This document shows positions 4,637 to 62,747 of a stretch of 64,000 nt of DNA, in pieces. Position 1 is the first letter of the stretch. Each line of letters begins with the position of its first letter. The DNA comes from Macrostomum lignano (Eukaryota): contig NIVC01001011.1 of NCBI GenBank assembly GCA_002269645.1, positions 1-64,000 on the forward strand, in the 5' to 3' direction. The notes below the pieces were generated by a model. The model was given only the letters and a program-made list of their open reading frames with translations, made no database searches and was not told the origin of the DNA. Made by a program: the position numbers and the translations under genes.

Positions 4637-7600
4637 ATGCAGCTAAGAACGCTGTTAGTGCTTCTGCTTGCTGCACTGGAGCTGTCCGAGGCTCAGCAGG
4701 ACACGGAGCTGCATCTGCAATCCAACCAGTTCCACCGGCTGCTCATCTTCGTAGAGGATCACCGAACTGGCCAGCCGCCTGTCGGTCAATCGCGCCACCT
4801 GATTGAGAAGATCAAGGTGAGAATCAATTAAGGTCTTAACAAGAAGTTCATGCACAAACGTCACTTAAGGATGAGTCACAGGTGCTCAATCAATCCGCAG
4901 AAAGGATTTAATGACGCCTCCAGGCTGCTGCAGAACTTGACCGCTGCCGTTGGCCGCCCGATGAGGCTCGGCAGCGCCAGCGTCCTGGTGTCCGCCAGAC
5001 TCGGCCGCGAGCTTCGAACCGCCGGACTGCGCGTCGGAGACGCCCGGTGGCAGCGCCGGAACCGAGCCGACTTCGTCGTCACTCACGAAGTCGACGCCGA
5101 TACCGAGGGCTCGGTCGCCATGGAGACCGGATGCGGCAAGCCCGGCAAGAAAGTCGTCATGCAGGATGCGAGCTTCATGAATGACTCAAACAGCATCGGT
5201 GAGTGCTCAGTTGGTAATTGGTACTGAGCCAGAGCCCTACTAGTCTCACACAATCAACTGACCGAGTCCAGTGTTGAACCCCAATTGCAGTGCACCGCAA
5301 GGTCGCTCTGTTCTTCTCGCAGTACCGCTGGGGTCTGCTGAGCGAGCAGCCGGTCGGCAGTCCGATCGAGACGGGTCCCGACGGAGAGCTGCGAGTCTCC
5401 GCCTGCTCCGCTGAGCTCAGGGTCCGACTGGCCGCCGCGGACGGCAGCTCGACGTGCGAGTTCGACGTGAACTCGCGTCGAACGTCTCGGGGCTGCGCGC
5501 CGAAGCTGAGCGAGTCGCAGCCGGACGGTCCGCTTGCGTCGTTCATGTTCGCTCCGTTCCACCGAGCCGTGAACCGCTTCTGCGATGCAAGGTCGAAGGA
5601 GCCTCAGCTGCAGCACAACGGCATGGTGGACAGTCTGATGAACAGGCAGTGCGACGGTCTGAGCGCAGCTGAAGTGCTGCGGAATCACCGAGACTTCTGG
5701 GGAACTCCAGACGGTACTCGGCCAGCACCTGGCGACATAAGTTTCGACATCGTCGCTGAGAAGTCAAACAGACGCGTAGTTGTTGTCATGGACACCTCTG
5801 GTAGCATGAGTAGAGTGAGTGACTTTAGCTTCGAGAACTCAATTCTTTGTGGCGAGTGTGCTGAGTATGAGGACCCTAAGCTAATATGCAACCAATTGTT
5901 AGATCTACGAGCTATCGGCATCTCAACAATCGACTAATGTCATTCAAATTTTCGGCTTTGATTTTTAATCGCGCTGACTGAAATTACATATATTGTATTA
6001 ATTCATTTATTTAAATCATTAGGGAAATCGGTTGACTATGATGAAGAGCGCAGTCAGCCAGTTCCTTATGGAGATTCTTGAAGATGGCTCCGAATGCGCA
6101 TTGATCAGCTTCACGAATGGGCATCAATTGCTTTCCGGATTCACGAAAATTAGGTCCAGGGAGGACAGAGAGAATTTGTCCAGACTGGTTGAAGCATTGA
6201 ATGCGTCAGGAAGCACCTGTATTGCTGGAGCTGTCCGTGCAGCTGCATCTGTGAGTACTAAGGATATAGCAGATATGTACGTACATGTACCAGTACGTAC
6301 GCTCGTATATATCCCTCAGGCACTTTCACCAAGAAAATACGAGCCAGCAAATTTGATTGCGTTTTGCAGCTCCTTGGCTATAAGAACTCGGCCGGGCCAT
6401 CTGCGACGACTACTGGACAAATCATTCTTCTTTCTGACGGTGAGGAAGGCTGCAATGGGAGAGGAGGTCTGAACGGCCTCATCAACTCATTGTCCGATTC
6501 GAGCATTCAAGTGGTCTCCATTCGCTACGGAGACTCCGCTGAAATGCTAATGGACAGGCTAGCCGACGCGACAGGCGGTCAAAAGTTTTTCCAAAGCACA
6601 AACATCTTTGATGCCAGCGGACTGCGACTGGCTCTGGGCGGGACAATCATGGAGCTTGAGGAGTCCAAGAGGTCGCTGACGGTGAGCTGTGCTGAAATAC
6701 TGTTTGAACTCTGTTGATTGTTAGTTTATCTATATGCTGACGATATGGATTGCTTCTGAATTGATTTTCTCAAATTGCGGAAGTGTGCAACGAAGTCTTT
6801 ACCACACCTAGACCGTATTTATAATCCTTTTGGCAGCTGATCTCTGAAGTTATCGAAGGCCGCCTGACGCGTCGCAGGTTCTACGTTGACCACTCGGTGC
6901 GGCGAGACCTCGTGTTCCGGGTGTCTGCACCGGCCAATCTTCGTAGAGTGCAGCAGCTTCGACTGGTGCTGACGTCTCCGTCAGGAGCGAACTTCAGCTA
7001 TCGAAATTCTTCAAGTACATATGAAATCAATGCTAAGCTCGGAACCATTGCGATCAGGGTTCCTGACTTGTACATTGAGGTAAGCCGAATCCAGCTGTGG
7101 CTGATGCCCATGCAGTCCGTGAAGTTTATAAAGTAGCGCAATTGCCACTCATATGGACACTTCAGAACGGTACGTGGACACTAAGAAACGAATACAACTC
7201 ATCGGATGTCGGATTTGTCAGCAGCGATGGCGGCTTCATCGCTGTGACTGGAGAGCAGCTGACAATGCCACTGAAGCCCCCGTTGTTCTCACCGCTGAGG
7301 TCAGTCCGAGAAAAGTTGACAAAATCTTTGTAAACACCACAATTGTCGTGTACGCTCGTCTGTTGAGAGGTCATTCGCCCGTGACAGCTGGGAAATTGTT
7401 TGCCACTGTGAAATCCGATGCAGAACTGGTTGCCACTGTTGATTTGAGTGACAATGGAGCTGGTAAGGGAGTAAAGCATAAGAAAACATAATTGCATTGT
7501 ACTTTGCACCTTTGAAGCAAAAAAATTATACAACTGATTCTTGCGCAATTTAGGAGCCGATCTGAAGATCAGAGATGGCACCTACTCCGCCTACCTGCCC

Positions 7601-14442: not shown

Positions 14443-17400
14443 TCAACGACTGCTGGTGTTGAACTGCATGAAGTACGCTGCCGTGGGCGGGTTGGTGTAC
14501 AACTCTTTTTCCAGGAACTCTTTGTGCGCCTTCTGCTCCCTGGCTAGGCGGAGATTCTCTTCGGCCTGTTTGCGCTGCAGATCGCGGTTGACTCGTTCAA
14601 CTTCGCGCTCGATGAGCACCCCGGTGCGAGCCTGCGTCAGGAGGAGTCAGTGCGAAATGTTAGTTTCTGGCCAAGCCTTCAGGCACAGTCCGGCGGTGAG
14701 TACACGACGATCAGAAGTTTTACAGTTTATAATGAACTGCAGTAAAATTCTTAAACATCTAAGACTCTGGGTAAAATTTAAGATTCATAAGAGCCTGGAC
14801 GTTCATTGAAGAGTTTGTTTGGTTTTTGTAGGAATTCGAAGTTACAATAGCATCGCAAACGCCCCTGCTCTGATTCTCCTAGCGGCGACACCATTGCAGG
14901 GTGTCGGGACTTTTGCTACCTCGGCTCTATAGTCGCCTCTCCAGATGAAATAAACCATTGCGGACCGGCGTGGACAGGCCTGGAATGCAGCTGACCAGCT
15001 CAGCCCTGTCTTCGATCAGCTCAAACTCCGCATCTTCCTCTACGGCCTTGAGGCTGTGCTCATCACTGCAAGCCGCCGGGAAGAAGTCTTGAATGCGGCC
15101 TACAGAGCCTTCTCTCTGAACATCCGCTACCCGTGCACCCTGTCAAACCGCGCTCTGATGGCGAAAACCGGCATCGCACCGCTAAGTGACATCCTCAGAC
15201 AACGTAGGCCGCTGCAGTCGTTGTTGCCAACCCAACTCAGAAGGGATTTTGCCGAGGACGAGCCGGCATCATTAACCTCATTGACACTGACGATCTGCGC
15301 GTCCTGTACCTGACTCCTAGCGAGGCCATGCAACTTCCCTCCTCGGTTTTCCGCGAAGCGTTTGTGCATTAGGGCTCTTTTAGTCCTCTGCGTCGCTACT
15401 TCTACTACTACTACTATGCTGACGCAAATGCTGACAATCTATTAACAATTTGATTTCGGCAAACATCAAATGATTAAAGTGATTCGCACCTGCAGCGCCC
15501 GCTGGCGATCCCACTCGTCCTTCTCCCGTTTCTCGGCCTCCCGCTTGCGCCGCTGCTCTTCAGCTTGCAGCGCCTGAATGCGGCGAACCTCCTCCTGCTG
15601 CTCGGGCGTCATGCCCTTCCAGCGGTCCGGCACGACTCGGTGAGACCCGAAGGCGCTCTGGGCCACCGCCGGATTCTCCGTCAGCATGTCGCTGAAGATT
15701 GCGTTCGACACCTCGGTGGCGTTGTCGTCCTGCTCCTGAATGTGTTGGCCAGGATGAGTAGATTATAGATAAAAGGAGATATTTAAATTTAATAAATGAA
15801 CCCACCACCCCAATAAAACAATACAGTCATGCGCCGCATAAAACCCACCACCCCAATAATACACAACCCAAGCTGTGCGCCCCATAAAACCCACCACCCA
15901 CACATCCCAGCTGTGGGCCCAATAAAACCCACCAACCCAACAACACACAGTCCAACAGCTATCCAACAACTAATAATAGACAATAAAGCCAATGCAAAGC
16001 AAAGTTCTCTTAAGCGCCGCTCACCTGCTGCCGCCGCAAGCGGGCCCTCTCCTCGGCCTCCCTGGCCAGGGCATTGTTATAATCGGCCGTGGCCATGTTG
16101 ATGGCCCGACGGCATGCCTCCTCAGCCTGGGCCAGCTCGCAGGCGCGCTGGTCCAGCTCGCGCCGTTTCAAATCGTATAGCCGGTCGGCCTCTTTCTGGC
16201 CCCACTTGGCGGCGTCCTTCTCGCGCTGCTGCTGAAGCGACCACTCGCGCAGCTGCTCCTCTTGAAGTCGGCGACGAGCCTTGGCATTGAGATCCTCGCC
16301 GTCGAACTTCTGCAACGAGCTGATGGTGCAGCGCGGATCGTCGTCGTGCACCCTGGCCGGCTTGTCCTTCTTCAGCGCGTCCGGGTCGTACAGGTCCCAC
16401 TCGCGCCGGGCCTCCGGCTGCTGGTGCAGGGAACGAAACTCGTTCTCGTACATGTTTAGGGCGCGTTTGTCCGCCTGCTGGCGGGTTTCCATCAGAGTGG
16501 CGATTTTGTCGTAGCGAACCGCGTCCTGAGCGAAGGCCTCCTCGCGCTCGCGCTCGCGCTGCTCGTGCTGCTTTTTCTGGTCAACCTGCTGCTCGAGGCC
16601 TTGGACATCGATCTGGGCAGGAGAAGCACAATAGAAACATCCTAACATCGAGATACACATTTTCATATGCTTAAACACTTTATAAACTTGATATTATAGG
16701 ACTATGTATAGCAACAAATTTATATAGCATATGTTTTGATTACAATTTGCCAGAAATATTCAGTGTTATAAAATTGCTCAAAACCAGCAACATTTTAAAA
16801 TAGAACTAATAATAATTTGATAAGTATAAACTTAATGCCATTGCCTAGAAATTCAAATTCTAAAGAGGTTTTGAAATTACAATGATATTAGTATACATAT
16901 ACGCAGATAACAAAAAGCAGAAAACTTTTTTATGTTCTTTGAGATTTTTATCTTAAAGTATAGTATTTATCTCTAATCATAAGAATTATGAATAATAGCG
17001 AAAAACACAAAAGATTTTGCATCTTCAATTAAAAATTATTTTATACATAAAGGACTAATTCTTATATTTTAAGGCAAAAGATTAAGGACTTTTCTGATAG
17101 CCAATAGATGGTATACCTTACATTTTAAGTATTTCATTTTTATTGTAGAATTTTAATTCTTAATTTGAATTTAATTTAGCTTTGAAGCGAATTTCAACTT
17201 TTGCATTTATACCTCCAGTCAGATTCGCGTTCTTCGATTTTTGCTTGGATTTTCGGATAACAAAAAATGTATTAACCAATGTACAATTTATTAATTTAAA
17301 CAGACTATCAAGACAATAATTTTTAGCCACTTAAATACATTTATCATATTATATTCAATTTTATATGATGATGATGATTCAATTTAGCATGAATAATTAG

Positions 17401-22300: not shown

Positions 22301-25300
22301 CTGGACCTAAGCAGAACCAGAGATAAGGAATACATAATAAATTAATTTAGGGTATGTTGTAACATGGCAAATTTAGTATGGAAGTTAGTGGCATACATTT
22401 CATTCTGTTAATCTAATTCAATTCAAATTTGCACCAAAAAGACTTTATTTAAACAAAATATAAGCTACTTTCAACACCTTAATTTTTTAAATACTGAAAT
22501 TAGTACTTTACTATCCAAATTTGCTTCTATGGTGCTTAAACTTTTTGTTCTTAATATTAATTGAGCAGTTTTGAAACATACTTGCCCTGGTCATCTTATC
22601 ATCTAGTTAGATGGCCAGGTATATTGTATACATATTAATTTGAGACTTCATATTTATTTCCTTGTTTTTAAACGTGGAGGGAAGCATGGGCAACCCTCTA
22701 AAAGTTTGTGGAAAGCTGTTTGAGAGCAGGAATCCCAGCAAGAAAGATCTAGAGTCCGTAAGTCTTAGAAAAGGCTTCAAGATAGGAACAAGTCTAGGCA
22801 GCTTCATTATTACCAAGGGCAAATCTTTTATTAGGTAAACAAAAAGCTAAGAAAGCTTCTCCAATAGGGTTACAAGCCACAAGGCTTCTTCATTACCTAG
22901 CACTAATAAGTTTGGAATTTCTAAGTAGCAGTCTAGGAGCAGAAAGACCCAAGTCTTAAATAGAAATGGCTTGAATAATTGAAGTGAGTCCAGACACATT
23001 ATTTACCAAAAGTCTCCTAATAGACAGGAAGACTGGCTATGTATAGGTCTACAAGCCTCAAGGCTTATTCACTATCTAGCTTAGGTAAGCCTAGGCCAAG
23101 TGGTTAGAGATAGGAGAGGCACTAAGGAGCAAAGGGACCATTGGACTCAGCCAGTTTTCCCCAATTTGGGATGAACATCAACCTCATTAGTAGTTCTAAT
23201 AGACTGATTATATGTAATGCATAAAGAAAAATTCTTATTTCTATATTGACAAATGGTCTTCTTAAAAATATTGAAAAATTGTTGGCAAACATCTTTAAAT
23301 GTTAGTTAATATATTTAATTTATAAAATTAAATCTTAAGCACTAGCCCTATAAGAATTTTCAAAATAACTTAATTTTATATTCCTATGCAAATACAAAAG
23401 TATAAAGCAAAATGCAAAAGCATTCATACATGCGCAACTGCTGGCCGACCTGGCCGATCCGGCCACCGTAAATCGTGGCTGACCAGGGGTAAGTCACAAA
23501 ATTGAGTCAACCAAAAACAGAAAAACACAAGAACCAAGAAAGGCAAGAGGAAAGCAAAAGAAAGTGCAGTTCAGGGAAAATGGTGAAGCAAAAGAAAAAC
23601 TATTCGCAAAAGAAGCAAACTAAGTTGTAAAAATAATCAGGTAAGTCGCAAAAAGGATCAGGTAAGTCGCAAAAGAAGCAAACTAAGTCGCAAAAAGGAT
23701 CAGGTAAGTCGCAACAGGAATCAGGTAAGTCGCAAAAGAAGCAAACTAAGTCGCAAAAAGGATCAGGTAAGTTGCAAAAGGGTTAGGTAAGTCGCAAAAA
23801 GGATTAGGTAAGTCGCAAAAAGGATCAGGTAAGTCGCAAAAAGGATCATGTAAGTCGCAACAAGAATCAGGTAAGTCGCAAAAGGATCAGCTAAGTCGCA
23901 AAAGGATTAGGTAAGTCGCAAAAAGGATTAGGTAAGTCGCAAAAAGGATTAGGTAAGTCGCAAAAAGAATCAGGTAAGTCGCAAAAGGATCAGCTAAGTC
24001 GCAAAAGGATTAGGTAAGTCGCAAAAGGGTTAGGTAAGTCGCAAAAGGATTAGGTAAGTCGCAAAAGGGTTAGGTAAGCCGCAAAAGGATTAGGTAAGTC
24101 GCAAAAAGGATTAGGTAAGTCGCAAAAAGAATCAGGTAAGTCGCAAAAGGATCAGCTAAGTCGCAAAAGGATTAGGTAAGTCGCAAAAGGGTTAGGTAAG
24201 TCGCAAAAGGATTAGGTAAGTCGCAAAAGGGTTAGGTAAGTCGCAAAAGGATTAGGTAAGTCGCAAAAAGGATTAGGTAAGTCGCAAAAAGGATTAGGTA
24301 AGTCGCAAAAAGAAGCAACTAAGTCGCAATAAGAGGGAAGTAAGTCACAATCAGAGGCAATCAGGGGGTAGTAGGTGCAAGTGTGGCAGGAGAGCAAAAA
24401 CAGAATAGAAGCCTTCAACCACAGACAAGATCTTTGAAATCAGAAGCCCGCGTCCACAGTTTCCCATTGATTTCTTAAACTCTGGAGCAGGGGTTGGCAA
24501 ACTCCGGCTTGTGAAGCCCCTCTATCTGGCCCTCGCCCCTCGGGTTCTTTGAAACTTCCTAACCAGCAAGGTTGGTGTCTCTTCAACTCTCATCTCTCTC
24601 TTCTTCTCTACCTTGCCTCCCCTCTTCTCTCTCTCCCCCCTTTTCCCTCTTCTCTCTCCTCTCATTTTTACTCTCCTCTCTTCCCCCCCTTTCTCTCTAC
24701 CCTTTCTCCTCAATGCCCTCTTCTCTCCTCTTATCTTCAGCAAAAATATGTGCATATTTTCTTACTTCAAAGTAGAGGGAATAGAATATTAGAGATAAGC
24801 AAACAGAGGGGAGGCGAGCGATGCGATGGGAGAAAAGATAGAAGAGGAGAGAAAAGCTGAGGGAGGAAAAACAGATGAGAGAGAAGAGGAGATTAGAGGA
24901 AAGAGGAAAGAAAAGATGATGGATGAGATCAGAAGAGAGGAAAGAGGAAAGAGGAGAGAGTAGATGAGAGAAGAGAGGATAAAGAGGAGATGAGAGGAGA
25001 GTGAAGAGAGGAGAGATGAGAGAGTAGAAATGAGAGATAAGATGAGAGAGTAGAGTGGAGAGAGACGAGAGGGAAGATAAGATGAGAGAGTAGAGTGGAA
25101 TGGAGAGATGAGAGGAGATAAGAATGTAGAGAGGAGACAGAAGAGATAGGAGAGGAGAGGAAAGAGAGAAGGGATAAGGGATGAGAGAGAAAAGAAAAAG
25201 AGGATGAGAAGATTGAGGAATGGAGAGAATTTGCAAAGGCCTCAACTCAAATCTTAGTTTAACATGCATTACTCCCATCTTTGCCTTTTTCCTAACTGTT

Positions 25301-26419
25301 AACAAGTTTTTGTTTGAGCATGACTTCAAATTTAGAATCTATGCAAAAATAGTTCCGGGAATTAGAATTCAGTGGTTTAAAAATCTGTGGGTTTTCACAG
25401 CTTGTATCTCTACTGGATTCGTATTCTGCATCTGATGAGCCATCTGAATCAGGGCTCTCATCTTCCATGCCAAATCGTCTAGCAAATCGTTCTTGAGCTA
25501 TAGGTCACATTGTATTCACTTCACTTACTTCTGGACATTCATGAATCATGACTTTTGTAGTATGCTCACTACACTGTACTGACAATTTACTAATTGCTTC
25601 ATGCCGCCACTAGATGACACTGATTAGCTGTTATAAAAACGCGGAATCTGCACGCAGCACTAATTAGCTGGCGAGGCATTTAGCTTTAAAAATATGGTCA
25701 TAGTTACTCCTGCCGTTTACCTAAAGTTTTTGCTTGGCTCTTTCATAGGTAAGTTGCATTTTTTATCGAAAACTACGTTGCACGGCCAGCGTAATTTCAG
25801 AAGTTGCGCATGTATGAAAGCATTGGCAATAAAATACTAAGTAAAATTAATTAGGGACAAGTAATTAACTTGTGCTTTAAACTCATAAGAAATTATAAGA
25901 AATAATAACTTTAGAAAAGACTATCAAAACTCAAAAATGCTTGATTTAATACCATAGTCTATTTTGTCACAATTATACTCTAGTATAAGTCATCTTAAAA
26001 ATAGCTGATATAAAATATTATAAAATTTTTTGGCATGTTTGTTTTATTTAAAAAATAATTAAACAAAAAAATTTATGTTTGCATTTGAATCCTATGCAAA
26101 AAATAAACAAAAACTTCCATAAGGTTACACTACAGTGTTACTACCAATTTAATGCCACATTTATAATTATAGAAGGCATTTTTTAGACAAAAATATATAG
26201 TGCTAGCAATGTATTTTTATTGCACTTTTTTATCATGGCATAATTTGCATTTGTTTTGTACAAGTTTCACTGAGTTTTAATTTGATTTAAAAAATTGCAA
26301 AATAAAATTTAAAGTACATTGCACAATGCAATGCACAGATAGGCCACTACACTTACTCTAAGAACATGATAACCATCAGTTCCTCCTCCTGGAACAGGGG
26401 CGCTACTGCCTGCACCCAT
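19316..26419 (-). CDS. GORASP: Golgi reassembly-stacking protein GRASP55/65, 337 aa, 5 exons
   Basis: Exons 26419-26357 ([21 protein letters not shown]; myristoylation-type MGxxxS), 22306-22226, 22122-21835, 20230-19979, 19645-19316, all phase 0. Tandem GRASP PDZ motifs [44 protein letters not shown], followed by a P/Q-rich tail. Exon 1 is missing from the ORF track. Confidence 0.96.
20431..21380. mobile_element. Non-autonomous hAT-like element carrying a 21-bp minisatellite (20497-21260), GRASP intron 3
   Basis: Termini CAAGCGCGTCGCCA / TGGCGACACCCCTG. 8-bp flanks AATTTAGG (20423-30) and GATTTAGG (21381-88), 7/8 match. Internal unit GTGCCTGTGGCGCTAAAATGA. Confidence 0.7.
23425..25816 (-). 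mobile_element. 2.4-kb non-autonomous DNA transposon, copy A (GRASP intron 1); 15-bp TIR CATACATGCGCAACT, 8-bp TSD
   Basis: Perfect TIRs and perfect TSD AAAGCATT (23417-24; 25817-24). Inverted homolog at 60464-62747. Internal ~20-bp TAAGTCGCAAAAGGATTAGG array and CT/AG-rich tracts. Strand is relative to copy B. Confidence 0.92.
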
Positions 26420-39406: not shown

Positions 39407-47480
<8,074 letters not shown>

Positions 47481-51272: not shown

Positions 51273-51449
51273 TGTTAATGTCAAATCGAAAGTTCATAAA
51301 TTAGCTACATGTAGTTCATTCCGTTCAGTCTAAATTCTGCAGACTAATCAATCAGCAGTCTAGCGGCTATCGGCTAAATGTTTCAAGTTTAACTGAGTGC
51401 ACAAAATACAGTTTATACTACACACGTTTTATTCGTATTTTAATTGATC

Positions 51450-51654
51450 AGGCCTTGTATTATCTGGAACGCTTATTGCCAGCGTAGCATAAATTACGAC
51501 ATGCTGAAGCGGGAGCTGCTGGCTACCAATTCGGCTCAATTTGGCGGAACGCCGGGTCCGATTGCGACTCCGGCAGATCGGATAATCAGTGCGAAAGGTG
51601 CTGCTACTGTATGTCCTGCTCAAGTCTAAGGTGCTTGATGAGCCAGCTGGATAA
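51450..51654 (+). pseudogene. Decayed paralog of the secreted 6-Cys protein (54116-54373 exon); signal exon deleted, frameshifted
   Basis: PCIIWNAYCQRSINYDMLKRELLATNSAQFGGTP, then shifted frames giving DCDSGRSDNQCERCCY and LLKSKVLDEPAG*. The downstream flank is also homologous to 54374-55010. Confidence 0.8.
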
Positions 51655-52524
51655 ACGTGAACGCGCTGCATATTGACAACAAAACATGATATTGGAACGA
51701 CCGAAGACAATCACAATGATTCATGACATCAAAAGCTTATTTAAATACATCGTTTGAAAGCAGAGTGGCCAGAATTAACAACTGCATGCTTATGATGTTG
51801 AATGAGACTGATGATAGCTTTGAGTAACTGTGTATCCTTTAATAAAGCGTCGAGTAAATTTGCTAAGCTTGTTTTAACGCTCTAGAAAGTACTTATTGAG
51901 TTAAAAATGGTGTCAATCATCACGCAAATACGATGTACGCTTGCAGTAGTTTTGGCGTCAAGCATACAGGGATATTTTTGGATATTTGTATGCATGTGCT
52001 TTTAAATTGACATCATGTACATGCAAGACAACCGACAGTTGAGCCCAGACAGACAGCAGCCACAGCTGCGGACCCGGAAACGGGATATCGAACAAATCTG
52101 TGCAGTTTGTCAGTAGACTCATTAGACTTACGCCAGATACTCATGCAGTTAAATTCAAGTTTATTTAATGCAACGATGGCTTTCTGCTGCTGTGACACGT
52201 GGGTGGACACAAACCCGAGCAGCGGACTTCAGCGTGCTTGTAACGTCGAAAAGACAAAAGACGCCAGAAATAACTACATACATAACTACATAACTACGCC
52301 AGCCAAAAGACACCCTGCTGTCTTTTTAACGGTCAAAGGCGCCCAATGATAGCCATAGACAAGCTGATTGCTGTGCGGCGGTTAGGATGGCGAATCGAGC
52401 CCATGGAGGCCTAGGCTTTATTTTTGTGCCGACGTGATGAAAGACGAATCTCCCTGTGATTTCAGCAGTTCGTCTACCTCAGCGGTCTGATTCTAGCGAT
52501 GTTCGTGAGGAGTTGCTACGTAGT

Positions 52525-53022
<498 letters not shown>

Positions 53023-53092
53023 TGTTTGATTGCACCTTGAGATTGTGGGGTAATTTTGCTGAATACAATGTCTGGACGCTAGCTTTAAAGCG

Positions 53093-53320
53093 AAAATATG
53101 CGACTTCCTGCTTTTAATTGCCTTATATAAATGTCTGAGCAACTGGCGATTGATGCAAAATGGAAAGTTCGAAAATATGCGACTTCCTGCTTTTAATTGC
53201 CTTATATAAATGTCTGAGCAACTGGCGATTGATGCAAAATGGAAAGTTCGAAAATATGCGACTTCCTGCTTTTAATTGCCCTTTATAAATCTCTGAGCAA
53301 CTGGCTGTTGATGCAGAATG
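53093..53320 (+). repeat. 79-bp unit x3, each containing a TATA-like TATATAAA/TTTATAAA
   Basis: AAAATATGCGAC recurs at 53093, 53172 and 53251. Confidence 0.85.
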
Positions 53321-53642
53321 GAAAGTTCATCAATTAGTTGATCCCGTTCAGCCCAACTTCCACAGACTAATCAACATCCATTTTATCGACTATCGGTTAA
53401 TTTTTTAAGTTCAACTGGGTGCACAATAACTACACCATTTAGTTGCAATTTTCGTCTCAGCTGTAAGTCAAAAAAGTAATTGCCACTTTAAAAATTGGTC
53501 AAAAAAATTCCCTTCAAACGTTAGGGCTTAAAAAGCATAAATAGAAATGATGTGTGCGTGGAGGGGACCTCAGCATCGAAGAAAGCAATCCCCTCAGTGA
53601 AAAGTTTGATTTTTAAAATCGAAGTCAAAAATATAAAAAAAA

Positions 53643-54373
53643 ATGCTGCGACTCGTGCGACCTCAACTCGTGTTTGCCATCGCGATGCTTCTTGTGGCCG
53701 TCCACGCTCAGGTAGCGCAATGTTGATGTTGCATTTGCAGCGACAGTTGACAATTTCTTTAAGCATCGATTCGGTATCTGTTTACTTACGAAAGTCTAGT
53801 ATCTGTTAGAATGTGACGCTTGAGCAAGGTTGCTAGGTATTCCAGTGGCGTACGCAGAGGTCCTTGCCGCCCATCAACCCCTCCAGAAAATCCATCACAG
53901 AGGTGACTAAGGTAAACCAAGAGACAGGGGCGCCCACATAGAGGCAGGAGAGACCCTATCAATAGTAGCACGCACTTCCAGCCAATTTGGTAACACATCA
54001 GAGACTTTGGCGACTGTTATTACTGGCTCAGCAAGTTAGTTTTGAAAGCGCCCATACTAGCACCGTTTTCTTAGCCAGATTGATACATCTTTCTCGTGTA
54101 TAATTTCTTCACCAGAGCGGTCAACAAGAGATGAATATGAGACAGCTGGAAATGGTGTTCAGGCCTTGCATCGTAAACGACCGCTGCCCGCGCGGCTTGA
54201 GCTACGACATGCTGAAGGAGCAGGTGCCGGCCAGCTATATGCTGGCTACCTATTCGGCTCAATTTGGCGGCACGCCGTCCGCTTGCGACTGCGACAGATC
54301 GGATGATCGGTGCAACAGGCGCTGCTACTATGCTCTGTACAAGTCTATGCTGCTTGGCGAGCCCGCTGAATAA
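53643..54373 (+). CDS. Predicted 108-aa secreted protein with six cysteines; no family recognised
   Basis: Exon 1 53643-53711 (MLRLVRPQLVFAIAMLLVAVHAQ, signal-peptide-like; donor GTAGCG) plus exon 2 54116-54373 (acceptor TTTCTTCACCAG), in frame. A paralog at 51450 conserves protein-level motifs. Confidence 0.68.
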
Positions 54374-55469
54374 ACGTGAACGCGCTGCATATTGACAACG
54401 AAACATGATATTGGAACGACCGAAGACGATCACAAATATACATGACATCTAAAGATTAAATATATTGTTTGAAAGCAGAGTGGTCAGAAAACAACTGCCT
54501 AAAGGCAATCAATCTAGCAAAGCATAAATTATGCATATTGAATGATTCCGATGAATAGTCAGAGTTTGTGTGCCCCTATATAAGGCTTCGAGTACAGTTG
54601 CGATGCTTGAATTCACGCTGGTAAAAGTACAAACTCCCATCCAGATTGTACTGTAGATAATTTTGTGAGTCATTATGCATGAAATACGCTCGCAGTAGTT
54701 TAGGGTACATTGCGCTGCGCTTTTAAAAATATGACTGAGCATTACTTTTAAAACAACTGACACTGAGACCATCAGACTGACACAGCAGCCACAAATGTAC
54801 ACCAGAGGACACAGGCCATCCAACAAATTCAAGTAGTCAGTAGACTCATTCGAGTAGCTCAGGTATTCAGTTAAATGCACTGTAAGTTTTTTAAATGCGA
54901 GACGGCTTTCTGCTGCTACGGACGCGTGGGTTCGACGACGACTCCAACCCGAAAGGCGGCTCAGCGTGCTTGCATGGGCTCGATCTTGTCTTGGTGTCTT
55001 CAACGGTTAAAAATTCCCGTGTCAGCTTAAGGACCACGTACCAATTGTAAATATGGCAAAATTCTTTACGTGCATTTTACCTGTGTTTTTTTCACTGTTA
55101 GAACAAAAGCATCGAGGCAAAGTTCGGCGGGAAAAAATCGACGGGCAAAATGTGTGGGCGGGCGATTCTCGTGCTCATGATGTTGAACACCACTTTCTGC
55201 CTCATATTCATTTCTCGTTGGGCACTCTGCAGGTGAGGAAATTACATAAGAAAGATTATCAAGCTGGCAAAGGAAACGGTACCAGTATAGACGCGCTTTC
55301 AAAACTAAATTTCTGAGCCAGTTTTAAGGATCGCTAAAGTCGCTGATGTGTTACCAAATTTTCTGACAGTGCGTTCTACTGGGTGCCCCTGTTGTGGGCG
55401 CAGCCCTGTCTCTTTGTGGGGGCCCCTGTCTCGTTGTGGGGGCCCCTGTCTCGTTGTGGGGGCCCTGTC

Positions 55470-55868
<399 letters not shown>

Positions 55869-56540
55869 TACGTAGCAACTCCTCACGAACATCGCTAGAA
55901 TCAGACCGCTGAGGTAGACGAACTGCTGAAATCACAGGGAGATTCGTCTTTCATCACGTCGGCACAAAAATAAAGCCTAGGCCTCCATGGGCTCGATTCG
56001 CCATCCTAACCGCCGCACAGCAATCAGCTTGTCTATGGCTATCATTGGGCGCCTTTGACCGTTAAAGACAGCAGGGCGAGATCGTCGTTGTAGCCATACA
56101 AGCACGCTGAAGTCAGCTGCTCGGGTTTGTGTCCACCCACGTGTCACAGCAGCAGAAAGCCATCGTTGCATTATAAACTTGAATTTAACTGCATGAGTAT
56201 CTGGCGTAAGTCTAATGAGTCTACTGACAAACTGCACAGATTTGTTCGTGCATCTATCTATATCTATCTATCTATCGCGGCAGTCAACATCGGCCATTGC
56301 AAAATCAGTCGGAGCTGCCCTGCAGGACGTACATGTACGTAGACTGAGGGCGGTGATCTGATCCTGGCGTTGGTCGAAACCATGCATACGCTCGTATAAT
56401 CTCACAACGCTAAAAGCCGTAACGCTGACGGAGTCAATTGCGACAAGCTACATGTGCATGATGTACAATAATATTGTCGGTGAAAACTTTCAGCACAAAC
56501 ATTAAATTATTCTAAGAGTTTTTTAATCGTGCTCAGCGGA

Positions 56541-60463: not shown

Positions 60464-62747
60464 CATACATGCGCAACTTCTGAAATTATGCTGGCCGTGC
60501 GACTTAGTTTTCGATAAAAAATGCGACTTACCTATGAAAGAGCCAAGCAAAAACTTTAGGTAAACGGCAGGAGTAACTATGACCATATTTTTAAAGCTAA
60601 ATGCCTCGCCAGCTAATTAGTGCTGCGTGCAGATTCCGCGTTTTTATAACAGCTAATCAGTATGTCATCTAGTGGCGGCATGAAGCAATTAGTAAATTGT
60701 CAGTACAGTGTAGTGAGCATACTACAAAAGTCATGATTCATGAATGTCCAGAAGTAAGTGAAGTGAATACAGTGTGACCTATAGCTCAAGAACGATTTGC
60801 TAGACGATTTGGCATGGAAGCTGAGAGCCCTGATTCAGATGGCTCATCAGATGCAGAATACGAATCCAGTAGAGATACAAGCTGTGAAAACCCACAGATT
60901 TTTAAACCACTGAATTCTAATTCCCGGAACTATTTTTGCACAGATTCAAATTTGAAGTCATGCTCAAACAAAAACTTGTTAACAGTTAGGAAAAAGGCAA
61001 AGATGGGAGTAATGCATGTTAAACTAAGATTTGAGCCTTTGCAAATTCTCTCCAATCCTCAATCTTCTCATCCTCTTTTTCTTTTCTCTCTCATCCCTTA
61101 TCCCTTCTCTCTTTCCTCTCCTCTCTCCTCTCTTTCCTCTCCTCTCCTATCTCTTCTGTCTCCTCTCTACATTCTTATCTCTCCTCTCGTCTCTCTCCAT
61201 TCCACTCTACTCTCTCATCTTATCTTCCCTCTCGTCTCTCTCCACTCTACTCTCTCATCTTCTCTTCCCTCTCGTCTCTCTCCACTCTACTCTCTCATCT
61301 TCTCTTCCCTCTCGTCTCTCTCCACTCTACTCTCTCATCTTCTCTTCCCTCTCGTCTCTCTCCACTCTACTCTCTCATCTTCTCTTCCCTCTCGTCTCTC
61401 TCCACTCTACTCTCTCATCTTCTCTTCCCTCTCGTCTCTCTCCACTCTACTCTCTCATCTTCTCTTCCCTCTCGTCTCTCTCCACTCTACTCTCTCATCT
61501 TCTCTTCCCTCTCGTCTCTCTCCACTCTACTCTCTCATCTTATCTCTCCTCTCTTTTCTACTCTCTCATCTCTCCTCTCTTCACTCTCCTCTCATCTCCT
61601 CTTTATCCTCTCTTCTCTCATCTACTCTCTCCTCTTTCCTCTTTCCTCTCTTCTGATCTCATCCATCATCTTTTCTTTCCTCTTTCCTCTAATCTCCTCT
61701 TTTCTCTCATCTCTTTTTCCTCCCTCAGCTTTTCTCTCCTCTTCTATCTTTTCTCCCATCGCATCGCTCGCCTCTCTGTTTGCTTATCTCTAATCTTCTA
61801 TTCCCTCTACTTTGAAGTAAGAAAATATGCACATATTTTTGCTGAAGATAAGAGGAGAGAAGAGGGCATTGAGGAGAAAGGGTAGAGAGAAAGGGGGAGA
61901 AGAGAGGAGAGTAAAAATGAGAGGAGAGAGAAGAGGGAAAAGGGGGGAGAGAGAGAAGAGGGGAGGCAAGGTAGAGAAGAAGAGAGAGATGAGAGTTGAA
62001 GAGACACCAACCTTGCTAGTTAGGAAGTTTCAAAGAACCCGAGGGGCGAGGGCCAGGCCAGATAGAGGGGCTTCGCGAGCCGGAGTTTGCCAACCCCTGC
62101 TCCAGAGTTTAAGAAATCAATGGGAAACTGTTGACGCGGGCTTCTGATTTCAAAGATCTTGTCTGTGGTTGAAGGCTTCTATTCTGTTTTTGCTCTCCTG
62201 CCACACTTGCACCTCCCCCTGATTGCCTCTGATTGTGACTTACTTCCCTCTTATTGCGACTTACCTAATCCTTTTTGTGACTTACCTAATCCTTTTGCGA
62301 CTTACCTAACCCTTTTGCGACTTACCTAATCCTTTTGCGACTTACCTGATTCTTTTTGCGACTTACCTAATCCTTTTTGCGACTTACCTAATCCTTTTTG
62401 CGACTTACCTAATCCTTTTGCGACTTAGCTGATCCTTTTGCGACTTACCTAATCCTTTTTGCGACTTACCTAACCCTTTTGCGACTTACCTGATTCCTGT
62501 TGCGACTTACCTGATCCTTTTTGCGACTTACCTGATTATTTTTACAACTTAGTTTGCTTCTTTTGCGAATTGTTTTTCTTTTGCTTCACCATTTTCCCTG
62601 AACTGCTCTTTCTTTTGCTTTCCTCTTGCCTTTCTTGGTTCTTGTGTTTTTCTGTTTTTGGTTGACTCAATTTTGCGACTTACCCCTGGTCAGCCACAAT
62701 TTACGGTGGCCGGATCGGCCAGGTCGGCCAGCAGTTGCGCATGTATG
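60464..62747 (+). mobile_element. 2.3-kb non-autonomous DNA transposon, copy B, nested in the maT catalytic domain
   Basis: TIR CATACATGCGCAACT and perfect TSD ATGCTGAC (60456-63; 62748-55). Near-identical (by eye) to the reverse complement of 23425-25816. Confidence 0.93.

Follow-up and report, generated by a model that had tools for sequence, protein, structure and literature searches.

A predicted secreted six-cysteine protein of Macrostomum lignano, its undescribed paralogue family and its broken second copy

Gene structure and predicted protein

The window, which is the whole 64,000-nt stretch of DNA analysed here, corresponds to positions 1-64000 of Macrostomum lignano contig NIVC01001011.1 (assembly Mlig_3_7, GCA_002269645.1). 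On its forward strand, exon 1 (53643-53711) and exon 2 (54116-54373), separated by a GT..AG intron, encode a 108-aa protein. The translation shows 100% identity over the full length to PAA73435.1 (BOX15_Mlig007900g1) of M. lignano, which is deposited as "hypothetical protein BOX15_Mlig007900g1" and annotated at 53643-54373 of NIVC01001011.1, with coordinates exactly matching the two-exon model. Since RNA-seq transcript assemblies, both genome-guided and de novo, were the only source of the GenBank annotation of Mlig_3_7 (PMC5730564), the Mlig007900 splice junction has indirect transcript support. The two-exon model proposed in the initial annotation is correct, residue for residue. The same annotation described the model as absent from the ORF track, which is true of the mechanical list of open reading frames but not of the public annotation, where PAA73435.1 was already present. 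Mlig007900 is a real, expressed M. lignano gene that has been annotated before. The following features were assigned to it:

53535-53550, plus strand: TATA-like block GCATAAATAGAAATGA, about 100 nt 5' of the ATG, putative promoter (read directly)
53643-53711, plus strand: coding part of exon 1, MLRLVRPQLVFAIAMLLVAVHAQ, equal to PAA73435.1 residues 1-23 (signal peptide and Gln23)
53712-54115, plus strand: intron of 404 nt, GTAGCG...CACCAG, phase 0; donor and acceptor conserved in the L002 and L003 copies
54116-54373, plus strand: coding part of exon 2, 85 residues, predicted six-Cys four-helix domain (family alignments; AlphaFold2 pLDDT 90.5)
54369-54374, plus strand: AATAAA, candidate polyadenylation signal overlapping the stop codon (read directly)
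54371-54373, plus strand: stop codon TAA, end of exon 2
54455-54460, plus strand: ATTAAA, second polyadenylation candidate (read directly)

The 75-85% diverged pseudogene copies of the related contigs L002 and L003 keep the TATA-like core ATAAATAG together with most of the ~30 nt that follow it, and we infer a promoter role for the block at 53535-53550. Directly 5' of this region lie three 79-bp tandem repeats (53091-53328; two identical, the third 92%), which are also found in L002/L003.

The N-terminus of Mlig007900 combines an n-region containing R3 and R6, a hydrophobic core at residues 9-20 (Kyte-Doolittle mean ~3.1) and a predicted cleavage site, V-H-A|Q, that obeys the -3/-1 rule. On inspection of the sequence, all three elements fit the signal peptide predicted earlier, and a direct count agrees with the cysteine spacing C-x5-C-x32-C-x-C-x6-C-x3-C that had been reported with it. 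The predicted mature chain has 86 aa (~9.9 kDa, pI 5.4, GRAVY -0.61) with six Cys and 6 Met. It ends in ...LLGEPAE, and its sole RR pair lies inside helix 4; at the C-terminus there is no dibasic or Gly amidation motif of the kind sought in neuropeptide and peptide-hormone precursors.

AlphaFold2 modelling from the single sequence gave a pLDDT of 78, and inclusion of 12 family sequences gave a pLDDT of 90.5 and a pTM of 0.82, with helices at 2-21, 30-36, 39-50 and 64-80. In the maturation that we propose, cleavage at A22|Q23 would remove the signal peptide and expose an N-terminal Gln that may cyclise. Folding in the ER would give a compact bundle of four helices held by three disulfides, in which Cys4-Cys5 would close a short loop onto helix 4, while Cys1 and Cys2 would link helix 1 and the loop after it to Cys3 and Cys6.

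The paralogue family and its comparison with named families

An exhaustive phmmer search over 1.84 billion representative proteins with Mlig007900 as the query revealed at least six further paralogue groups with 25-47% identity. All of these are M. lignano proteins (P0004, 47% identity, E = 2e-13; P0005, 1.5e-7; P0006, 2.7e-6; P0007, 5.2e-6; P0008, 8e-5; P0010, 3.2e-4), and each paralogue matches exon 2 by tblastn (E 2e-16 to 4e-4). A word-indexed protein search returned only Mlig007900 itself and an older mis-modelled prediction. Two profile searches of the word-indexed collection, whose recall was poor since they missed known members, also produced only M. lignano proteins; a further two-domain member, P0018, was recovered by profile search. 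The metagenomic JGI protein P0009, a 567-aa sequence with internal repeats and 20% identity, was regarded as spurious. The lineage restriction suggested earlier is borne out by these searches, with relatives found in M. lignano only (phmmer over 1.84 billion proteins and profile searches of poor recall).

The family includes BOX15_Mlig032223 (99%), Mlig031165 (47%), Mlig014068, Mlig001682/030151 and Mlig014137/003397/013351, together with the two-domain proteins Mlig029205 and A0A1I8G7C1/A0A1I8G9Z9. The paralogues are labelled "hypothetical" or "uncharacterized", and some carry automatic saposin or WAP names in UniProt. The family alignments show invariant C41, C47, P77, C80, R91, C93, Y95 and A96 and nearly invariant P40 and C89, within the motif RPC..(5-6)..CP...P.eC.C...ERC.R.CYYA..K (the consensus can also be written RPCIV...NCP...P.eC.C...ERC.R.CYYA..K). 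A mature domain of ~75-85 aa is found throughout the family and a signal peptide is common to its members, with Gln at the predicted mature N-terminus in three M. lignano paralogues. The single-domain genes follow a plan of one signal-peptide exon and one domain exon: a separate signal-peptide exon was found in the four that were examined (the window gene, Mlig032223, Mlig031165 and Mlig001682), and exon 1 of the latter three encodes a signal peptide of 16-24 aa. Although the initial annotation could not assign a family, the protein can be placed in an unnamed one, with at least seven paralogue groups including Mlig007900, a shared motif and a shared exon plan. Judged by these alignments, Mlig007900 belongs to an undescribed multigene family detected in M. 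lignano only.

The paralogues differ from Mlig007900 in two respects. Firstly, some of them have two domains, whereas Mlig007900 has one, and Cys4 and Cys5 are both absent from the second domain of P0005, P0011 and P0018. A Cys4-Cys5 disulfide is suggested because the two residues were lost together, and this co-loss, a single evolutionary event in one paralogue lineage, points to their pairing. Secondly, Mlig007900 lacks the basic, acidic or amidation-type C-terminal tails of several paralogues. Basic or amidation-type tails (...QQRFPGKRSV, ...SKRFFGFQG, ...WRRRR and ...DKRR) occur in P0004, P0006, P0007, P0013 and P0014.

Searches for a named family gave no significant match in Pfam, PDB sequences or PDB folds, in line with the initial description of the protein as unrecognised. 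A Pfam scan of the query and 12 family sequences (E<=10) revealed no consistent match, and the noise comprised scattered single-member matches to RhoGAP, Tospo_nucleocap and DUF7545. The only match of the family profile to PDB sequences was the insect odorant-binding protein 6jpm, which is not significant (E=0.79). Foldseek found nothing below E=1 when both AlphaFold2 models were compared with the PDB and the better one also with predicted viral structures; for the pLDDT 90.5 model the best PDB match had E=3.0 (TM ~0.2-0.27), with no saposin among the 12 matches listed, and as Foldseek is weak on small helical proteins, the lack of a match is no proof of a new fold. The predicted structure is a confident four-helix model without a known structural relative in the PDB.

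Several named families resemble Mlig007900 in part. Saposin-like proteins share with it a length of ~80 aa, a helical structure, six Cys and, sometimes, tandem domains, and one paralogue is named "Saposin B-type domain-containing" in UniProt (A0A1I8GAE8). However, neither the Pfam families SapB_1/SapB_2 (query and 12 family sequences, E<=10) nor Foldseek support a saposin identity, and the Cys spacing of the family differs from the saposin pattern. The WAP names given in UniProt to Mlig001682, Mlig030151 and Mlig014068 are likewise unsupported by Pfam and Foldseek: the "CP" following a cysteine is a point of likeness to the WAP four-disulfide core, but that core has eight Cys against six here, our model is all-helical, and there is no Pfam WAP match in the sequences scanned. 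Insect odorant-binding proteins (PBP_GOBP, 6jpm) are likewise small, secreted and helical with six Cys, and gave the weak profile match mentioned above. They have ~120 aa and six helices, in contrast to 86 aa and four predicted helices here, and a different Cys spacing; there was no Pfam or fold match, and this identity also found no support.

In the type II CHH/MIH/ITP hormones (Crust_neurohorm), a signal peptide directly precedes a helical hormone of ~72-80 aa, in which six Cys form three disulfides. They have a C-x3-C on a helix, and some are amidated via a C-terminal G-K(K/R). Mlig007900 resembles them in having a signal peptide directly before a helical six-Cys domain. In contrast to them, it has another order and spacing of Cys, C-x5-C-x32-C-x-C-x6-C-x3-C being different from the CHH signature, and there was no Pfam match among the 12 family sequences and no PDB structural match. 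The Crust_neurohorm family is known from ecdysozoans and is not known from flatworms.

The broken second copy and rearrangement of the locus

The locus also contains the remains of a second copy of the gene, here called X, and a pair of inverted repeat arms. These features and those found at other family loci are:

51448-51785, plus strand: Xb, 3' half of the broken copy (exon 2 from codon R39 and 3' flank), with frameshifts and a 15-nt deletion
52089-53246, plus strand: left arm of the inverted repeat, unique sequence and (ATAG)n at 52525-53022
55184-55380, minus strand: Xa, complementary half (3' end of the intron, acceptor and exon 2 to codon F38), found by blastn
55474-56276, minus strand: right arm of the inverted repeat, (TCTA)n at 55470-55866 and unique sequence
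L006 15933-16254 and L007 11412-11733, minus strand: inverted frameshifted copies at other family loci
L005 2027-2793, plus strand: two-domain genes, a tandem pair with an LTR retroelement between them

The upstream decayed copy noticed in the initial annotation is real: positions 51448-51785 align with 54159-54498 at ~85% identity. This copy has lost 15 nt, carries two insertions that shift the frame, and lacks exon 1 and the intron. The complementary half, Xa, is inverted and occurs 0.8 kb downstream of the intact gene, and blastn aligns 53964-54145 with 55380-55197 at 80%. The homology of Xa stops at ...GTGTTCA (F38) and Xb starts at TCAGGCC (R39), so that the two share a 3-nt overlap, TCA. 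Because they are complementary with this overlap, Xa and Xb are the halves of one copy cut in exon 2. With the intact gene between them, the halves are now 3.4 kb distant from each other and oppositely oriented, an arrangement that is the sequence signature of an inversion breakpoint within the gene, between codons F38 and R39. The description of Xb as a decayed paralogue holds in so far as it is a pseudogene copy; it was not worn down simply by point mutations but was broken by a rearrangement within exon 2.

The downstream segment with a C-x5-C spacing, HCKISRSCPAGRTC (56295-56336), which had been taken for another relative, proved to be a chance resemblance. The string is present, but no family member aligns there by tblastn (E<=10), and in the six-frame translation of the 64,000-nt window C-x5-C occurs 187 times and C-x5-CP 13 times. 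Duplication and pseudogenisation, also proposed earlier, can be seen at the Mlig007900 locus and at two paralogous loci. Mlig031165, the closest paralogue, has an inverted frameshifted copy 5 kb downstream.

Near-identical copies of the gene are present on L002 and L003, as expected because M. lignano has been described as a recent polyploid (PMC10733133). The protein encoded there, P0003 (Mlig032223g1/g2, 109 aa), has one Val inserted in the signal peptide and the substitution Q28R; in both copies the frame is kept and both splice sites are identical to those of the window gene. The window and the L002/L003 copies are ~98% identical in introns as in exons, and this comparison was therefore set aside as evidence for purifying selection.

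The intact gene and Xa sit between the inverted arms, which are 98% complementary between 52325-52917 and 55474-56066 and each consist mostly of an (ATAG)n array. Comparison of the orientation of the window (52089-56276) with L002 (8528-13861) and L003 (8500-18164) showed that the block of arm, gene and Xa is collinear with the window on L002/L003, with both flanks reversed, a single arm and no Xb. That the relative orientation is opposite in the window and L002/L003 is confirmed by the neighbouring kinase gene. On L002/L003 the 5' part of copy X follows a satellite; in L003, exon 1 of this part is frameshifted and its donor has changed from GT to AT.

We infer a history of four steps for the locus. 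Two tandem copies would have been present originally, and an inversion common to all copies would have split X between F38 and R39. Xb would have been lost from the L002/L003 lineage by deletion between the arms, which at that stage were in direct orientation, and in the window lineage a second inversion and the loss of the 5' part of X would have followed. This model fits all shared and private junctions. The flipped gene segment could be a real inversion via the inverted repeats, possibly a reversible one, or an assembly error.

Several repeats and sequence differences were observed around the gene copies. The 20-bp satellite GTTGTGGGGGCCCCTGTCTC is present as four copies at 55391-55471 of the window and is expanded to ~0.55 kb in the introns of the L002/L003 gene copies and to 1-5 kb downstream of the genes (L002 10280-10860 and 12354-13461; L003 12547-17600). 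Identity among the window, L002 and L003 is 98-100% in the exons, at the ends of the intron and over the 400 nt upstream, and the first 300 nt after the stop codon of the window gene (54374-54673) show only 89% identity to L002 11317-11616 and L003 11257-11556, with 19 gap columns. The ~100 nt after the stop codon in the window (54374-54470) are ~90% identical to Xb by eye. The divergent 3' flank of the window copy may reflect gene conversion between copies.

Elsewhere in the window there are genes for a CLCA/VWA-like protein (5290-6472, plus strand), RIB43A (16010-16678, minus strand, E=2e-66) and a Ser/Thr protein kinase (40797-42758, minus strand), which have no obvious functional link to the secreted protein. 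The long 5' ORF at 46011-47480 (minus strand), within the span of the neighbouring protein-kinase gene, contains ~40 copies of a 24-nt in-frame repeat (...APTVTVRI...) at 45964-46971, and the region is ~96% conserved on L002. Two ORF segments in opposite orientation (24697-25329, minus strand, and 60814-61885, plus strand) have long near-identical Ser/Leu/Pro-rich stretches and, from their sequence, are a putative dispersed repeat or transposon remnant.

Possible functions and significance

The best overall explanation, which we regard as probable when taken as a whole, is that Mlig007900 is an expressed member of a secreted six-Cys helical family with a role as a ligand or carrier, at a locus that once held two copies. 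That it encodes a real, secreted and disulfide-bonded helical protein of a lineage-restricted family is very likely. The proposal of a secreted soluble ligand or carrier with extracellular action is tentative. Mlig007900 would be released from a gland or neurosecretory cell, and its conserved surface with methionine-rich helices would bind a partner outside the cell. A role as a lytic peptide, an enzyme or a toxin is improbable. A cationic lytic or antimicrobial peptide is argued against because the predicted mature chain is hydrophilic with a pI of 5.4, and since non-Cys residues are conserved at 25-47% identity, the pattern argues for a conserved binding surface and not for hypervariable toxin loops. 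A search of the searchable full-text literature for seven family gene identifiers found zero papers, and the identifiers were absent from the M. lignano supplementary text that was searched, where no expression data were located. The more specific readings that follow overlap one another and the ligand or carrier proposal.

The small size, predicted secretion and lineage restriction of Mlig007900 would also suit a reproductive secretion, the leading idea of the initial annotation, which we consider somewhat unlikely. Such a protein would come from the prostate gland, as part of the seminal fluid, or from a female gland; it would be passed on at mating and be shaped by sexual selection. Many Macrostomum prostate transcripts are short secreted orphans, a background that counts for this reading, as do the duplicates and pseudogenes at three family loci. 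A screen for putative seminal-fluid proteins has been published for Macrostomum (PMC5977470), and reproduction-related genes have been described as evolving rapidly in this genus (PMC7336406). However, no family identifier was found in the supplements of the seminal-fluid screen and of the comparative RNA-seq study, which were represented by partial files using other transcript identifiers. In addition, paralogues at 25-47% identity keep many non-Cys residues, more than expected of a fast-evolving seminal protein.

A peptide hormone or neuropeptide-like ligand with a helical six-Cys domain, organised by analogy like the type II CHH/MIH hormones, is unlikely. It would have in common with them the signal peptide directly before a conserved helical domain of 75-85 aa, and the C-termini of paralogues would be trimmed or amidated by a prohormone convertase, a carboxypeptidase and an amidating enzyme, as the GKR, KR...G and RRRR tails of P0007/P0013, P0004, P0006 and P0014 would allow. 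On the other hand, the tail motifs vary among paralogues and could be due to chance, no Pfam Crust_neurohorm match was found in the 12 family sequences scanned, and the Cys spacing is unlike the CHH signature. The basic or amidation-type paralogue tails, together with the PC2 homologue present in M. lignano neurons (PMC4490696), suggest a regulated secretory route (convertase, carboxypeptidase) for at least some family members. This prohormone-like argument does not apply directly to Mlig007900, which ends in ...LLGEPAE without a dibasic or amidation motif.

More doubtful is a carrier of hydrophobic ligands or lipids, or a membrane-active defence or digestive protein, analogous to saposins or odorant-binding proteins. 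The model of a small disulfide-locked helical bundle with methionine-rich helices is compatible with such a protein, and the two-domain tandem members recall prosaposin; the UniProt name of one paralogue ("Saposin B-type domain-containing") and the sole PDB profile match, 6jpm (E=0.79, not significant), could be read in the same way. Nevertheless, Pfam found neither SapB nor PBP_GOBP in the 12 family sequences, Foldseek retrieved neither a saposin nor an odorant-binding fold (best E=3, TM ~0.2-0.27), and both families differ from the protein in Cys spacing. In being acidic and hydrophilic, it is also unlike lytic saposin-like peptides. We attach a similarly low probability to the broader proposal that the family represents an unrecognised flatworm signalling class, namely disulfide-locked four-helix hormones or waterborne or contact pheromones with a fold unseen in solved structures. 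If this were true, some members would be matured by a prohormone convertase and amidation, and Mlig007900 would be a ligand with its own receptor.

It is highly improbable that the locus is not a functional protein gene, although it is repeat-rich and rearranged and also contains a 125-aa antisense ORF (54071-54448) and an 80-aa ORF from an internal ATG (54131): the plus-strand frame is kept across six or more divergent paralogue groups, in which Cys, Pro, Arg and Tyr positions do not vary, every single-domain gene examined has an upstream signal-peptide exon, and the intact gene is preserved in three copies whereas copy X is frameshifted, which argues against a non-functional transcribed ORF. 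The antisense product and the internal start without a signal peptide were both rejected in view of the family conservation and the conserved signal-peptide exon.

The new elements of this work are the recognition of the family, a confident model without a known fold relative, and the reconstructed history of the broken second copy. Orphan secreted cysteine-rich families are common in invertebrate genomes, and on present evidence Mlig007900 is an ordinary orphan of this kind. At the locus itself, an inversion breakpoint has destroyed one gene copy and left its two halves readable, and the segment bounded by inverted repeats, in opposite orientation in related copies of this recently duplicated genome, is useful for the study of rearrangement in duplicated genomes. 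M. lignano is a flatworm model with established stable transgenesis (PMC5730564, PMC8717057) and is in use for studies of regeneration, adhesion and sexual selection. A conserved secreted family comprising several paralogue groups, with a confidently predicted fold that has no match, is a ready target for in situ hybridisation, RNAi and reporters in this organism, and could reveal a new gland product or signalling ligand.
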